From Klebsormidium nitens (taxonomy: Eukaryota; Plantae; Klebsormidiophyceae): a stretch of DNA of 64,000 nucleotides. The DNA lies in the NCBI GenBank assembly GCA_000708835.1, contig DF237103.1:105185-169184 (forward strand). The letters run 5' to 3'. Within the stretch, counting starts at the first letter, position 1, and each line of letters opens with the position of its first letter. This document shows, piece after piece, positions 39,320-45,963 of this stretch. Under the pieces are notes generated by a model. The model was not told where the DNA came from, did no database searches, and saw only the letters and a program-made list of their open reading frames with translations. The position numbers were made by a program, and so were the translations under genes.

Positions 39320-40146
39320 TGTGCCTGATTGTTAGGCGGTCGACCAAGTTGCTTGAAAAGTTCCCCCACCGCGTTTTTCCGTCAGCAAACCCCTGTACCT
39401 ACCACAGTAATCTACCACCCTGACCCCGCCTTGATCCTAAAACCCTCCTCCCGTATTTATGCCTGCATCAAATGGGTATTCCCTTCTTTAAATGCGTGCA
39501 GCTCGTACCAGTCCTACCAGGCTCTTGTGACGAGAGTGCCGACCTTGATCATACGGGCCTCCTTGCTGAGAAGTTCTGCATTTCTCTTCCCTCTGAAGCT
39601 GGAACAGCACAGCAGGTGTCACAGTTCACAACACTTGTCATACCGTTTATTTTCCGTGACCGCGACCGCGTATCTGACCGGTGAATATTAGATTATAGTT
39701 ATCTGTAGTGCTAATATGTAGCTCTTCATCCGCTACTGGGTACAGAATTTGTCTGTTGTCTCTATCTACTTGGGGAAATACCATTCTACATACGTATATT
39801 GACAGAATTGAACAAACTGAGATACTGCCAGAGCGCCCGATTATAACTGCACGACATGCATAAACTAGGTATTGGAGAGAGAGCACTGCGACTCCCTCGT
39901 CTGTGCAGTCAGAACTCGGACCTGAAGAAGTTGGAAGGCGCGGGGGCAGGCATGGGCGCTGAAGCCCGTGCAGAAGCAGGTTGGATTGGGCATTTTGGGG
40001 GAGCTCTCGCATCGGTCTCCTTGAGAATGCATTGATTGCTGTAGCTGTGACTTGAGCCTTGGAACTGCACGCCGCAAAAGTAGTGTGCGCAGACTGCAAG
40101 CAGCTAAGCTGAGGAATTTGGCACACTGTTGCAGTTGCCCGCAATC

Positions 40147-43100
40147 ATGGATGCATTCAGGAAGCAGCTGGATGATTTGATGGGGGCGAATCGAAATGGA
40201 GATAGCCGGGAGGTTGACCACAAGTATTATGACCGGGCTGTGTGTAGATTGTACCTGTGCGGTCTCTGCCCCCATGAGCTCTTCGTCAACACGGTAAACA
40301 TCAGCCTCCTCATGTGTTGTCAACTCCTTACTTCTGCGCCTGGACACGTGATTCGCAAATGTCAAGGTTTTCCTGGGCAGCTGTTTGATTGGAGTGGTCT
40401 TCCTTGTACGAATGATGTTCTGTTCTCAATAATAATTGTGGTAAAGGTCAATAAAATGTGGGGCTTTGATTGGGTTGCACGAGGAACGATTCTAGCTGTG
40501 GCCTAGTGTGGGTTGTGCTGACTGGATACACTCTACATGCAGTGCGTAATCCAGCCCACCTTAATGTTGCATCGTGTTGGTTTGCTCATGACCAATTCAA
40601 AGTTGTTCTCTGCGACTTACATGGAAATTCACGCTTGTCATCTTCAACTTGTCCTTATGGTAAATTCTTTATGATCGGCGCATATCTGTCTGCTTAGCAA
40701 ATTTGTTCACATCAGGGTGCTCTTTTCTATACCAGAAGTCCCTTCATTTCACTGAGGTTGTGGTCTTGAAAAGCAAGGACCTGAAGAAACCCTCGAAAGT
40801 AAAGAAGGGGGCATGTGTCCGCACGCTTCCTCAAATTGAGTACCGGCTTTGTACAGAAAATGGACATGGGCCCATGCCCAAAGGCGCATTCCGTGAAACT
40901 GCGCCGTGATTACGAGGAGGCGCGGAAGAAAGGCAAGGAAAATTACGACCGGGAGTTGGAGGATGCGCTGCTCAAGATCATCGACGAATGTGACCGCAAA
41001 ATTCAGCGAGCTCTCAAGAGACTCCAGGACGAGGACACGGGTGTGGCTACGGCAGTCCCGGTATCCAGGTCGACTAAGGTCAGTCAAAGTGCAGCACACG
41101 CACATTATTTTACGACATCTCGTACTGGTGCACTTTTTGAGATCTACAGAGCACGGATTGTCTCTCTGAGAGCGCAAAGGAGATAGGTACTAGAGTTTCA
41201 CATCGGGAGCGCATTTTGGAATGCGGCTGTCCAAGGAGTCTAGAGAAGAGATTGAGGGTGGTTATGAGCCGGATTGGTCAATGGGAAGAACAGGCTTCTA
41301 TCGACCTATTTCCTGCTCAGAGAAGAGCTAAGACATCGTTGGTTGTCGAGTCCCTAAACCAGTGCAATGTTCTGCGGATGCCAACTCTTGCTTTCCACCA
41401 TCTGCCAGTCCCGTCTTGTCCCCCAGGGAGTATGGTATGGGAGAACGTATGCGATATATCTCTTTGATGATCAATGTTTTGCTCTCTCTTCGCAGACTCC
41501 CGAGTCCCTGGAGATCAGCAACGAGATCAGGAAAAAGCAGCAGGAGGCAGAAGAGTGTGGTACGTTGGCTCATTTCTTTTGTAAATACCCACTTTGCAGA
41601 CCTCTTTTAGCAGCGCTTCAATTCTTGTATACCACGCTTAGAAGGACGATTTCTTCTGGCGTCTGTGGATTACCAGCTGACAAGTGTACATGGCCTTCCT
41701 ACGAGTGTTGACATACTGACGCTCATCAATTGTCTGCAGAACTGGCGGGGAAGTCTGATGACAAGCTTAAAATGATGGACGTGATCGAGGCGCTGAAGGC
41801 AAAGAGGGCAGAGATCCAGGTACTTACACTCCCTACTTTCAACAAGAGCCGCCACAGTAGCTTTTTGCGTAAGAAAAATGTACATCAGCACTCCATGCTC
41901 CAGTTTGTCTGTTCTGGTCACGCAGTATTTACGAGGGCTTCAGTGAACAGGCCAAATCTACTTCAATCCGGTTTTTGTAAGGGTCCACTCTCGTTTTTGC
42001 AGGCTGCCGCCCTCCTGGAAGCTTTCAACAAAGACAAGCAGCTGGGAGTGCCTGTCCCGCCCCCTCCCCCTCCCCCGCTGCCCTCCCCCCCTCCCCCTGA
42101 CCCCAGTCAAGCCCCCCCCGGTGGACCCCTTGATCCAGCAGCACATTGACGAGAAACTGAAGCAAGCAGAGCAAGCCGGTATGGTTTCATTCTATGTCTC
42201 TTTGCAAGTTGATATCAATGACTACCTCGTACAAAGTCCGGGAAAGCATCCATTGCTCGTTCCTGGTCCGACACAGAGAGAAGTCGTTCCTGGTTTGACA
42301 CAGAGAGAAGTTTTGAAGAATTGTGAATGTGGGCTACACAAGTCTCGAATCTGAAAAGGGGGTGGTTGCTGCAGGTGAGTCTGGCCAGGTGGATGAGGCG
42401 CAGCGCTTGATGGACGAAGCAGAGGCCCTCAAAAAGGTAAGCAGCTCCGAATCCAGAGTGAACAAGCAGAAACATCATTCCCTGGCATGGGCCCGAAAAT
42501 GTGCATTGTTCGCAGAGTGCATTGATTCTGCAACACTCTCTGTTTAGTGCTCAGTGATTGTTGCGCTCCTGCTCGGGACTGCTCCGGTTGATCTTTTCTG
42601 TCAACTGGTTATGCCAGTTTCTCTGCCAGGACAACCAGAGATGCTGAAAGCAAGCGCAGGGTTGCAAGTCGAGGCTTTCGGTTTGCATAGGTTTTGGAAA
42701 TGCAGTAAGTGTCATGTTTCTCCCCGCCTACTAATTGTCCGTGCTGCTTTTGCAGAGAGCAACGACTGTGGTTGTACCCGAGCCTCCTCGTGTACTGCAG
42801 CAAGTGGACAGCCGCATTGTAAGTTTCGTCACTCTTCGTTTTCAACCCTGCGTTGCCTCGCTTCGCTCGAGGCTATTTGCTGTTGCTTGTGGCCAATATC
42901 CGTCAAGATTGATGTTTTGCATGCCTCGATTGATTGGACGCTCGCGCTTCAATCCAAGGTCGCTTCGAACTTTTTTCTATCTTCTGAGTTACCAGGCTCT
43001 GGCAGAATCGTCAGATTGGGTGTTCACTGACGTACCTTGGTGCTTGCAGACGGATCAAAAGCTGCGTGTCTGTGACATCTGCGGAGCCTTCCTCAGCATC

Positions 43101-45625
43101 TACGACAAGTAAGCCGGCACCCTTGCTTGATGTCATCGAGAGTACTACTTACGAGATTCGAGTTGCGCACTTCCGGTCGCATTTGCATATTGAGCTCACA
43201 AACCCTGCCGAAGTTGACAGCAGTGAAGGACACACCATCGAGGTTTAAGTCAAGCAGCTGCGCACAGAGGGCACGAAGTATCAACTCGTTTCGATGCACA
43301 GAACGTGATTTGCGGTTCAGGCTTTGTTGATTCTTGAGAGAGTTGTTCTTAGCCACACAACGACCTCTGGAGTGTGCGTTTTACTTGATCTTGGTAGGCT
43401 CTGCTTTCTTCTTACTCCCGGTTTCATCGATCGGGAGCGATGGCATGGTGACAGTGCATCTCCCCCGCAAGCTTCTTATGTTCGAGGCAACACGGCTGTG
43501 GGGCATACTTCTCTGTGTCTCAGCATTTTCCGGCAGATGGGTCGGAGCCAAAACTGACACGCCAGTTGACTATCTAAAGTCAAGCAAAAGTTGCCCCCCC
43601 TGCAAAGCTCCTCTGATGAGGGCGCCTGTCCGTCGCTGCAGCCACCAGCGCCTTGCTGACCACTTTGGGGGGAAGCTCCACATCGGTTACTGGGAGCTAA
43701 GGGAAAGACTCTTGAAACTCAGGGTGGGTGCACGTTTTTCTTGCTCGCGTCTCACCCCGTCTGAGCCTGTCCTATTTCTGTGTTGCCTGTGAAAAGGAAT
43801 GCGAACACGGGGCTAACGGACCACCTGGGGGGGAAGCTGCACGTGGGCTACATGGAAGTGCGCAACAAGCTACACGCGATCAGGGTACGCGCAAAGAGTA
43901 TGGGACGGTCCCGTCGGATCTCGCTCACGAGCTTTTGACGCTGTTTGCTTGATGACGTCCGGTCTGCACTTGTTGGGGAATCGTTACAGCGTTGAATGCT
44001 GGTGGTTTGTTTCATTTGACCGATAAACCATGCAACTGTTCTGGAACCGTGCTATTTTTCAGGAAGCGGGATATTGAGAACAACATGTTCTTTTTTGCAC
44101 TCGTCTTTTCTGCACGAAGTTCGTCCTCGTAAAGCAAGAGAAGGCGTATGTCTTCTCTATAGTTCACTACATCCTCGTGATTCTGTTCTCCAGCGTTTAT
44201 AGGTCCAGGCAACATAACTGCCCGTCTTTTGAGGTGGTCGTAAAGGCTGTTGCGGAGCAGAGATTGAAGACAGGCTGGCTGACTCTTCGAAATTTCGGTT
44301 ACAAAACGCTCGCTCTGCACGTTTCGTCGCCCTGTTTGTTAGGGCATCATTCTTCTCAGTCTTCGTTCACCCGGTTCCCTGTGGGCAACTCTTTTCTTCA
44401 GATTCCACGACCCGCGCAAACTGGCAGCCGTAAATGCAGAGAAATGGACGGTGTGCCTTTTTGCAGGACGAGCGCTTGAAGGGCAGAGATGAGCTTCCCC
44501 CGCCGCCCCCACCTCGAGAGAAGGAGCGCGAGCGAGACCCGGAGCGCCCCCGCGACAGAGATAGGGAACGGGACAGGGAGCGCGACAGAGACCGGGACAG
44601 AAGGAAGCGGGAACGGTGAGGCTTTTTTTTTCACGGACCTGCTCCTATGAATGACTGTAGCGCCAGTTGTAGAGCTTAGACAGCGTGCTCAGTTGGAAGG
44701 GGTTTGCATGCAATTCATAGCGCGATTGCAATCTGCTGGCATGCGGATGAAAAGGTTGTGTCTCATCCTGACAGAAGCTTCATTGAAATTCATATCAGGA
44801 AACGGGGTAGCCCGGCATTTTGTAGAGGTGATTCGAAACAGAGTCTCTGATCCGACTCTCTAGGGAAAGATCGAAAGCCAGTAAGTGAAGCGAAGCAGCT
44901 CTCCAGATCAACGGCTTTCTGTTTTTTTTGAAGTAACAACCTATGACTGAACATCTGTTCCTCTGGTCAAGCAGCATTTGAAAGGTTTGCAAATTAACGT
45001 TTTATTTTCTGGGCGGCTCTTGAAATGGTCAATCGAGCCTCTTCCAAGGTTCGGCTAAAGAATCTCAAGCTTTTGGGACATTCTAGCATGCATCTAGGCT
45101 TTAGATGTCATTCATGTTATCCTGGAAAAGCGTCTTTTCATGTTAGCCCGGAACAGCGTCTCTTCCCTTGGGCCGGAATTCTAGTTGTGTTTGAATGCGC
45201 ACTCCAAATTTCCAGGTCGAGATCCCCAGTACGGGAGCGCGAGCGACACAGTCATCGTGAGAGAGACCGCGACAGGGACCATGAAAGGTACAGGTAAGTC
45301 TATTTTGACTTTCTCTAACAAACCATTTGTGATGGCCCAGTCGCTCGCCTTCAGTTTTTACCCAGAACATCAGCATCGATTTGTCAAGCGTCCTTAGTAA
45401 CTTACTGCAGATTGTGCAAGCGGGTTTTGCAAAAAGTGGCTCCAAGCTCGTGTTGCCATCATGTTCGTTTCACATTATTCTGAATTCAGATCGTTGTGAC
45501 CGTAGCATCCATCCTGAACTGGTCCCTTTATGAGTTCATCTCGGTCTACCTCATTCTGGTAATCTGCTCATTGTTGCAGGGATCGTGATGATAGAGGAAG
45601 AGGTCGTGATAGAGATCGTCGGTAG
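40147..45625 (+). CDS. LUC7: LUC7 U1 snRNP auxiliary protein (two zinc fingers, RS/RD-rich tail); about 408 aa
   Basis: Exons 40147-40293, 40857-41078, 41496-41559, 41740-41819, 42003-42178 (apparent +1 frameshift in a poly-C run), 42375-42436, 42756-42818, 43050-43108, 43642-43723 (or alternative 43797-43884), 44467-44615, 45216-45293 and 45580-45625. Motifs: MDAFRKQLDDLMG, VCRLYLCGLCPHELFVNTKMDMGPC and QKLRVCDICGAFLSIYD...RLADHFGGKLHIGY. Confidence 0.93.
43797..43884 (+). CDS. LUC7: Candidate alternative (mutually exclusive) LUC7 exon encoding the C-terminal half of zinc finger 2
   Basis: 88-nt segment with an AAG acceptor after a pyrimidine-rich tract and an AGG|GTACGC donor. Same phases (2 to 0) as exon 43642-43723; translates (K)NANTGLTDHLGGKLHVGYMEVRNKLHAIR with no stop. 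Confidence 0.65.
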
Positions 45626-45963
45626 GACTTTCAGTCCGTTTTTTGGCAGACTTTGTGAGCAGTTGTTGGGTACAATGAAAGATCCGGCACACCGTTCGGA
45701 GATCGGGAATGCAACCATACTTCTTTGCCTGTGCAAGCTGAGATGAAGCTTGTTTGTGCATATTGAACCACGCAGTGGTGCATGCAGTTGACTTCACACA
45801 ATGCCACATGCAACCGAGCATTGAGTTGGGCTTGAAGGAGACTTTGACCGGGCTTGTCGGACAAGATTGTGACTCTGTCAGATCGGAAGAAACATCACCT
45901 TCGGTTCTCGGCGAATTGACCAGAAGTTCACCCGCTCTGTGTGTTTCTATAGACCCCAAGTAG

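Follow-up and report, generated by a model that had tools for sequence, protein, structure and literature searches.

Two apparently mutually exclusive tandem exons give a LUC7-family gene of Klebsormidium nitens two versions of the C-terminal half of its second zinc finger

The 64,000-nucleotide (nt) stretch of the Klebsormidium nitens genome analysed here (assembly GCA_000708835.1, contig DF237103.1, positions 105,185 to 169,184; henceforth the window, in whose coordinates all positions are given) holds a LUC7-family gene on its forward strand, in which exon position 9 is filled by either of two homologous exons, 9A (43642-43723, 82 nt) and 9B (43797-43884, 88 nt). Exons 9A and 9B (in the following A and B) are a real and selected pair and, by the RNA contigs examined, a mutually exclusive one. 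With a probability of roughly 0.85, the locus is read as the gene of a LUC7L/LUC7L2-type protein of the U1 small nuclear ribonucleoprotein (U1 snRNP), in which an ancient tandem exon duplication left two copies that are now mutually exclusive, and whose two isoforms should differ in U1 stabilisation. Each mRNA would combine the constitutive exon 8 (43050-43108), encoding the Cys-x2-Cys half of the second zinc finger (ZnF2), with either A (the minor isoform) or B (the major isoform) and then with the constitutive exon 10 (44467-44615), at which the Arg/Asp/Glu-rich tail starts. The limits of A and B were set by RNA joints and conservation, those of the 73-nt intron between them (43724-43796) by RNA contigs and conservation, and those of exons 8 and 10 by translation and RNA contigs; all of these features lie on the forward strand. 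Tandem mutually exclusive exons and the LUC7 family are each known, and it is their combination that is new: full-text searches for mutually exclusive exons or exon duplication in any LUC7 gene returned nothing relevant, and searches for Klebsormidium together with mutually exclusive splicing returned nothing specific.

The sequence is present in 20 public runs from seven studies, which carry two organism labels with identical sequence. Contigs of four runs (X1, X2, X9, and X10) from four studies were aligned to positions 40100-45700; they are spliced and hence derived from RNA. The joints from exon 8 to B (43108->43797) and from B to exon 10 (43884->44467) were found in high-depth contigs of all four runs, the joint from exon 8 to A (43108->43642) in X2 and X10, and the joint from A to exon 10 (43723->44467) in X10, so that mature RNAs with each exon alone are on record. 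Neither an A-to-B joint (43723->43797) nor a joint from exon 8 directly to exon 10 (43108->44467) was present in the contigs of the four runs, which drop rare variants. This is the pattern that the earlier note on this DNA, made from the sequence alone, had expected of an exclusive pair, i.e., all four joints that connect A or B to exons 8 and 10 and none between A and B. Where both paths were present, the A path accounted for about one quarter to one third of the overall word depth, contig depth being a poor measure. Exon B predominates in all data sets, and exon A is a minor form used in some. The same note had described B as well diverged in sequence; it is indeed diverged, but it forms the dominant isoform and is not a side copy.

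Beside these joints, RNA contigs of each of the four runs contained intron 8 (43109-43641), with a depth of a few per cent of that of the exons (about 5-10%, the depths being rough), which is more than for most of the gene's other introns. The intron 8 contigs of X1 and X9 continue across exon A and end exactly at its donor. It may be that the intron ahead of the minor exon A is removed slowly.

Exon 8 encodes TDQKLRVCDICGAFLSIYD, followed by two bases (AA) of a split codon that ends at 43108, and its peptide is unchanged in three related lineages described below (L001, L002, and L003). Exon A lies between the acceptor ...GCTGCAG/ and the donor AGG/GTGGGT (slashes denote the exon borders), completes the split codon to AAC (Asn), and then encodes HQRLADHFGGKLHIGYWELRERLLKLR. 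Exon B, bordered by the acceptor ...GTGAAAAG/ and the donor AGG/GTACGC, completes it to AAG (Lys) and continues with NANTGLTDHLGGKLHVGYMEVRNKLHAIR. Both exons are entered in phase 2 and left in phase 0, and both have a length of 1 mod 3. The earlier description of two homologous tandem exons, 73 nt apart and equipped with AG acceptors, GT donors, and these phases, proved exact to the base, and translation bore out that both His ligands (DH-x-GGKLH) are kept in A as well as in B. Using either peptide as the query, tblastn retrieved the other exon at an E-value of ~1e-7, with everything else in the 64 kb window being no better than 0.3; a third copy of the exon was not found in the window with both peptides. 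The two peptides share 58% identity over 24 amino acids, the central 38 nt of the exons are 79% identical at the nucleotide level, and both exons match the Pfam LUC7 family at the same profile positions (~200-237), with 26.3 bits for A and 26.5 bits for B. Being adjacent, homologous, of like length, and of equal phases, the two exons have the arrangement of a tandem duplication.

Because both exon lengths are 1 mod 3, mRNAs that contain A and B together, or neither of them, would stop in exon 10. Joint inclusion (170 nt) leads to a TGA at 44490-44492, confirming the frame shift that had been claimed for it, and omission of both exons leads to a TGA at 44477-44479. These premature stops are located 120-140 nt before the next junction, and two junctions follow downstream. 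Transcripts with a stop upstream of later junctions are classical substrates of nonsense-mediated decay, and such a frame filter would remove both aberrant forms. The FGFR2 exons IIIb and IIIc are a known case of frame-incompatible exclusive exons policed by nonsense-mediated decay. The algal pair is alike in that both exons or neither shift the frame into a premature stop upstream of later junctions, and unlike in that the decay of its aberrant forms is predicted from the sequence.

The aberrant forms can also be placed at the centre of the explanation, with the pair being mainly a dosage device: unproductive mRNAs (containing A and B, neither exon, or a retained intron 8) would be sent to decay, and LUC7 would thereby regulate its own amount. 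Poison exons autoregulate many splicing-factor genes, and several features of the locus would suit such a role, namely the stops early in exon 10 of the forms with both exons or neither, the presence of intron 8 at ~5-10% of exonic contig depth (a rough value) and above most other introns, and the resemblance of the ultra-conserved exons and flanks, detailed below, to the conserved poison cassettes of splicing regulators. However, each of the single-exon forms is in frame, and strong constraint acts on both peptides, including every zinc ligand, which would be needless for a poison element; in addition, no joint of an A+B or a skipped form was seen in the contigs, from which decay could have hidden them. 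A device serving dosage in the main is thus considered unlikely.

Relatives of the gene were sought by an exhaustive profile-free search with exon 2, which yielded a 94-amino-acid open reading frame (ORF), P0001, with 99% identity to exon 2. The contig of P0001, called L001, belongs to the Logan assembly of SRR23617307 and carries the whole orthologous gene. ORFs of Joint Genome Institute (JGI) metagenomes (samples 3300060284 and 3300060285) that fell into the same 90% cluster led to L002 and L003/L004, and L005 (ERR10900065) reaches exons 1-2 only. A search for exon-B-like ORFs gave the L001 ORF as its sole match, and metagenome scans with peptide patterns and with the 44-nt invariant exon-B string gave no matches. 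Selection was assessed by Nei-Gojobori counts on the projected exons, in which dS and dN are the synonymous and non-synonymous divergences, pS is the proportion of synonymous differences, and P-values are binomial. As a side observation, L002 and L003/L004, from the JGI samples, are two versions of the whole gene in the same metagenome, with a dS of 0.12 between them in the constitutive exons and no difference in A and B; they may stem from two strains or represent two haplotypes or two recent paralogues.

In every lineage covering the region (L001, L002, and L003/L004), the 82 nt of A, the 88 nt of B, and all four splice sites are kept. The intron between A and B measures 73 nt in the window, 74 nt in L001, and 67 nt in L003/L004, and is 93% identical to that of L001 (pairwise alignment) and 76% identical to that of L003 (multiple alignment). 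The gene's remaining introns, 180-600 nt long, are indel-scrambled, with ~60% identity to L001 and an effectively random relation to L003. Between the window and L001, the constitutive exons have a dS of 0.52 and a dN of 0.009, and pS is 0.065 in A and B combined versus 0.378 in the constitutive exons (P 4e-6); exon A has one changed codon, and exon B has two synonymous and no non-synonymous changes. Between the window and L003, constitutive dS rises to 1.49 and dN to 0.055, and the corresponding pS values are 0.10 and 0.65 (P 2e-12); at this distance exon A has two synonymous and three non-synonymous changes (dN 0.047), and exon B, compared with L002/L003, has two synonymous changes and one non-synonymous change (dN 0.015). 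Silent sites in A and B are about six-fold more conserved than those in the constitutive exons.

Exon A is 97.6% identical to that of L001 and 93.9% identical to that of L002/L003, its peptide reading HQRLADH...RERLLKLR in the window, ...RERLIKLR in L001, and QQRLADH...RERLVKFR in L002/L003. The peptide of exon B (...NKLHAIR) is identical in L001 and carries one change in L002/L003 (...NKLLAIR). Silent sites included, all four lineages agree completely over ~60 nt inside exon A (43651-43708) and over the 78 nt with which exon B begins (43797-43874). The conservation reaches into the flanks: positions 43600-43641, directly upstream of exon A, are 97-100% identical to L001, as compared to ~60% for the rest of intron 8, and comprise a branch-point-like CTGAT (43613-43617), a GC-rich tract, and the acceptor CAG. 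The core of this block, CCTCTGATGAGGGC, together with CTGCAG is also invariant in L002/L003. Directly downstream of exon B, the conserved bases GTACGCGCAAAGAGT (43885-43899) that open the next intron are unchanged in L001 and, over their first 9 nt, in L003.

Both copies are thus kept by selection in L001, L002, and L003/L004, and, judged by these comparisons, both exons are under strong purifying selection on peptide and RNA sequence alike. Regulated alternative exons typically show such joint constraint at the peptide and the RNA level. The constancy of the silent sites is most likely due to splicing enhancers or silencers that bind proteins. The divergence of exon B in combination with its intactness had been put forward earlier as a sign of selection, and zero to one non-synonymous changes at a gene-wide dS of 0.5-1.5 uphold this; nor is B unused, broken in the relatives, or evolving at a dN/dS of about 1, which had been named beforehand as outcomes that would speak against the pair, as it is the major form and intact. 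For either exon, the status of a decaying duplicate is ruled out by the conservation statistics (dN of 0.047 for A and 0.015 for B versus a constitutive dS of 1.49).

A milder form of decay, in which exon A would be a relic, i.e., a non-functional leftover that is occasionally spliced after B took over, could be argued from the contigs of X1 and X9, which lack the A joints, from the minor share of the A path elsewhere, and from the amino acid changes among the lineages, which are more numerous in A than in B (three versus one). It is nevertheless rated as very improbable. Exon A is still 93.9% identical at a distance at which constitutive silent sites approach saturation (dS 1.49) and introns are unalignable, and a neutral 82-nt stretch would be unrecognisable at that divergence. 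It has retained its 82 nt, its frame, its acceptor and donor, and the upstream block with branch-point-like motif and acceptor; its dN of 0.047 is no higher than the constitutive 0.055, and its changes are conservative and situated at the ends (H to Q, L to I/V, and L to F).

For the mutually exclusive use of A and B, the short intron between them offers a candidate explanation. Its invariant GTCTGAGCCTGTC contains a putative branch-point A at 43764, at a distance of 41 nt from the A donor and of 32 nt from the B acceptor downstream; across the lineages, the branch-like A of the invariant CTGAG is separated from the A donor by 38-42 nt and from the B acceptor by 29-32 nt. At this distance, the predicted branch point would be too near to the A donor for both sites to be occupied simultaneously. 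Exons 2 and 3 of alpha-tropomyosin are an exclusive pair based on steric hindrance. The algal pair shares with them the short intron between the two exons and a branch point ~40 nt from the upstream donor, and differs in that its branch point is only predicted. Steric block and frame filter would likely act jointly, and the ratio of A to B may be set by dense cis-regulatory elements, which are suggested because of the near-total conservation of silent sites and flanking intron sequence.

A docking-site/selector mechanism, i.e., competing RNA structure, was considered as well and is not supported by repeats, covariation, or folding energies. A perfect 13-nt inverted repeat connects the start of intron 8 (43162-43174) with the inside of exon B (43854-43866; P ~0.03 against dinucleotide shuffles); its intronic arm is not kept in L001, and the repeat is probably due to chance. 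Consensus folds (alifold) contained no convincing covariation, the predicted helix between A acceptor and B donor had one compensated and three broken pairs and did not exceed shuffled controls in strength (z of -0.5 to -1.5), and the fold of the cassette was not unusually stable in comparison with shuffled controls (z of +0.5 to +1.5). The G-runs coding for Gly-Gly in A (43666-43671) and B (43827-43833) are complementary to two C-runs, one upstream of A (43594-43600) and one in exon 10 (44496-44501). The former C-run is shortened in L002/L003 and the latter is shifted in L001, and a conserved pairing of these runs is doubtful.

The swapped part comprises ~28 residues, extending from the loop that precedes the first His through both His ligands to the helix after them, and the isoforms differ nowhere else. 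Of the earlier claim that the gene has two alternative second zinc fingers, the part that one gene encodes two versions stands, but only the C-terminal half is exchanged, the Cys pair of exon 8 being shared. ZnF2 has the form C-x2-C ... H-x5-H with all four ligands intact, composed of CDIC from exon 8 and DHFGGKLH from A or DHLGGKLH from B. With A, Cys and His are spaced by 15 residues, which is also the value of the other family members retrieved; with B, the spacing is 17 residues. The helix after the second His reads WELRERLLKLR in A versus MEVRNKLHAIR in B. The swapped segment was aligned to residues 215-235 of yeast Luc7 and corresponds to residues ~213-241. At the positions of yeast R215/R216, Gln-Arg is found in A and Thr-Gly in B; the position equivalent to R216 is Arg in all 148 LUC7L2-type proteins retrieved, and the preceding residue is Arg in ~95%. 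Version B also has Thr for Ala218 and Leu for Phe221, and Asp219, Lys224, and Arg233 are kept in both versions.

Compared with the LUC7L/LUC7L2 motif D-x-D-R-R-L-A-D-H-F-G-G-K-L-H-x-G-Y, the invariant Arg and RLADHFGGKLH are retained in version A (DNHQRLADHFGGKLHIGY). In version B (DKNANTGLTDHLGGKLHVGY), DH-x-GGKLH-x-GY is retained, the loop has two extra residues, and both Arg are missing. By the motif DH-x-GGKLH-x-GY, as compared with LUC7L2-type proteins, both versions are provisionally assigned to the LUC7L/LUC7L2 type, and because both carry this signature, the pair does not appear to recreate the split between LUC7L2 and LUC7L3 paralogues. On this alignment, the main isoform is the one without the most conserved RNA-facing Arg of the family, and the minor isoform the one that keeps it.

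In yeast, the ZnF2 ligands are essential. The mutants D214A, R215A, R216A, and D219A are viable but have a weakened complex of U1 and the 5' splice site (5'SS), as seen from their bypass of Prp28, their synthetic lethality with other U1 defects, and their impaired splicing of the non-consensus SUS1 site (PMC4986886). Exchange of the yeast ZnF2 for the human LUC7L/L2 version changes the use of 5'SS with variants at +3 and +5, and exchange for the LUC7L3 version is lethal (PMC11251517). LUC7L2-type and LUC7L3-type proteins of human and Arabidopsis favour opposite 5'SS classes, and the class preference of the human paralogues is set by ZnF2-containing regions (PMC11842720). By analogy, it is plausible that the A and B isoforms hold U1 on 5'SS with different strength or selectivity, in line with the switch of 5'SS preference that the earlier note had proposed. 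The expected difference in U1 stabilisation would follow from the position of the swapped segment, whose yeast counterpart faces the duplex of U1 snRNA and 5'SS, with the Arg kept in A and with Thr-Gly and a longer loop in B.

The algal pair can be set beside both of these systems. As in the yeast ZnF2 mutants and chimeras (PMC4986886, PMC11251517), the segment concerned is the one that aligns to yeast 215-235 and spans D214/R215/R216/D219; unlike the yeast variants, which are engineered, version B of the alga is natural, is without both arginines, and is the main form. With the LUC7L/LUC7L2 and LUC7L3 paralogues of animals and plants (Kenny et al. 2025, PMC11842720) it shares the family, the location of ZnF2 beside the U1:5'SS duplex, and, as a prediction for the alga, the tuning of 5'SS choice by alternative versions. 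The paralogues, however, are separate genes that split before the divergence of plants and animals, whereas the algal versions are two exons of one gene, chosen by splicing and both of the LUC7L2 type by motif.

The exchange could alternatively affect a protein-protein contact, e.g., with the FF domain of Prp40, and not the U1:5'SS duplex. The swapped segment covers the yeast peptide 214-228, DRRLADHFLGKIHLG, which is reported to bind Prp40 FF1 (cited in PMC4986886), and the helix after the second His differs between A and B, too. According to the same source, however, the residue critical for the FF1 contact is yeast K224, which is kept in A and B, and residues 214-216, where A and B diverge most, are without effect on the interaction of the peptide with FF1 and with effect on U1:5'SS stability (PMC4986886). 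A difference in protein contacts in place of a difference at the duplex is hence regarded as quite unlikely.

Some observations weigh against the reading of the locus as a LUC7L/LUC7L2-type gene with exclusive exons and functionally different isoforms. The RNA data are assembled contigs and speak for presence only, so that A-to-B joints or rare forms could exist; contig depth provides no proper A:B ratio, and the full path from exon 8 through A to exon 10 was recovered in just one run (X10). The branch point was predicted from the consensus-like CTGAG only, and the literature yielded nothing usable on the intron-size distribution of the organism. RNA structure gives no account of the synonymous constraint, as the fold tests were negative. 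At the protein level, the net charge of the A and B segments is similar, and the single alanine mutants of R215 and R216 are viable in yeast, and version B may therefore have only a subtle effect. Finally, the difference between A and B in RNA contact or splice-site choice is predicted from the comparison of sequences.

The combination is of interest in several respects. A splicing factor swaps its own splice-site-facing module, and the non-canonical version is dominant and conserved; in humans, Arabidopsis, and yeast, variation of ZnF2 takes the form of separate genes or engineered mutants, and here it occurs as one natural gene with two versions. The pair amounts to a natural experiment on the ZnF2 loop, with two 28-residue segments suited to the existing yeast and human chimera assays. 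Mutually exclusive splicing is considered rare in the plant lineage, for which the pair is a well-supported case, located inside the splicing machinery itself. Going further, and tentatively, with more doubt than confidence, the A:B ratio may act as a genome-wide switch of splicing regime, e.g., with stress or life stage, by retuning the grip of U1 on weak or non-consensus 5'SS. If so, hundreds of introns would be retuned together, with the ultra-conserved cassette serving as sensor and perhaps being regulated by the isoforms themselves; a splicing factor would then reprogramme its own RNA-recognition module by splicing, for which animals and land plants use separate paralogues.

The coding sequence of the gene extends over 40147..45625 on the forward strand, with an ATG at 40147 and a TAG at 45623-45625. 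Spliced RNA contigs of the four runs define 12 exon positions, of which position 9 is either 9A or 9B, and all introns are GT..AG. Beyond the exons already described, these are exon 1 (40147-40293), exon 2 (40857-41078), exon 3 (41496-41559), exon 4 (41740-41819), exon 5 (42003-42178), exon 6 (42375-42436), exon 7 (42756-42818), exon 11 (45216-45293), and exon 12 (from 45580 to the TAG), all on the forward strand. Translation of the joined exons predicts products of 408 amino acids with exon A and 410 with exon B, both in frame, and either isoform has a LUC7 N-terminus, a first zinc finger, a proline-rich insert, ZnF2, and the Arg/Asp/Glu-rich tail. Exons 1 and 2 on their own match the Pfam family LUC7 (PF03194) with 57.2 and 58.0 bits, respectively (cutoff 33), and the best PDB match is yeast Luc7 (5zwn_Y). 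In a search with a profile of a conifer LUC7 and the exons of the window, the best 120 of 4130 matches were land-plant proteins only, with no product of an alga among them.

The predicted product lengths assume one correction of the window sequence, i.e., the removal of an extra C at 42093 within a C-run of exon 5 (42086-42100). If this base is kept, the reading frame breaks in exon 5. The extra C is missing from the RNA contigs of X1 and X2 as well as from all three related genomic lineages, and it is most likely a homopolymer error of the assembly, which could have harmed the public gene model.

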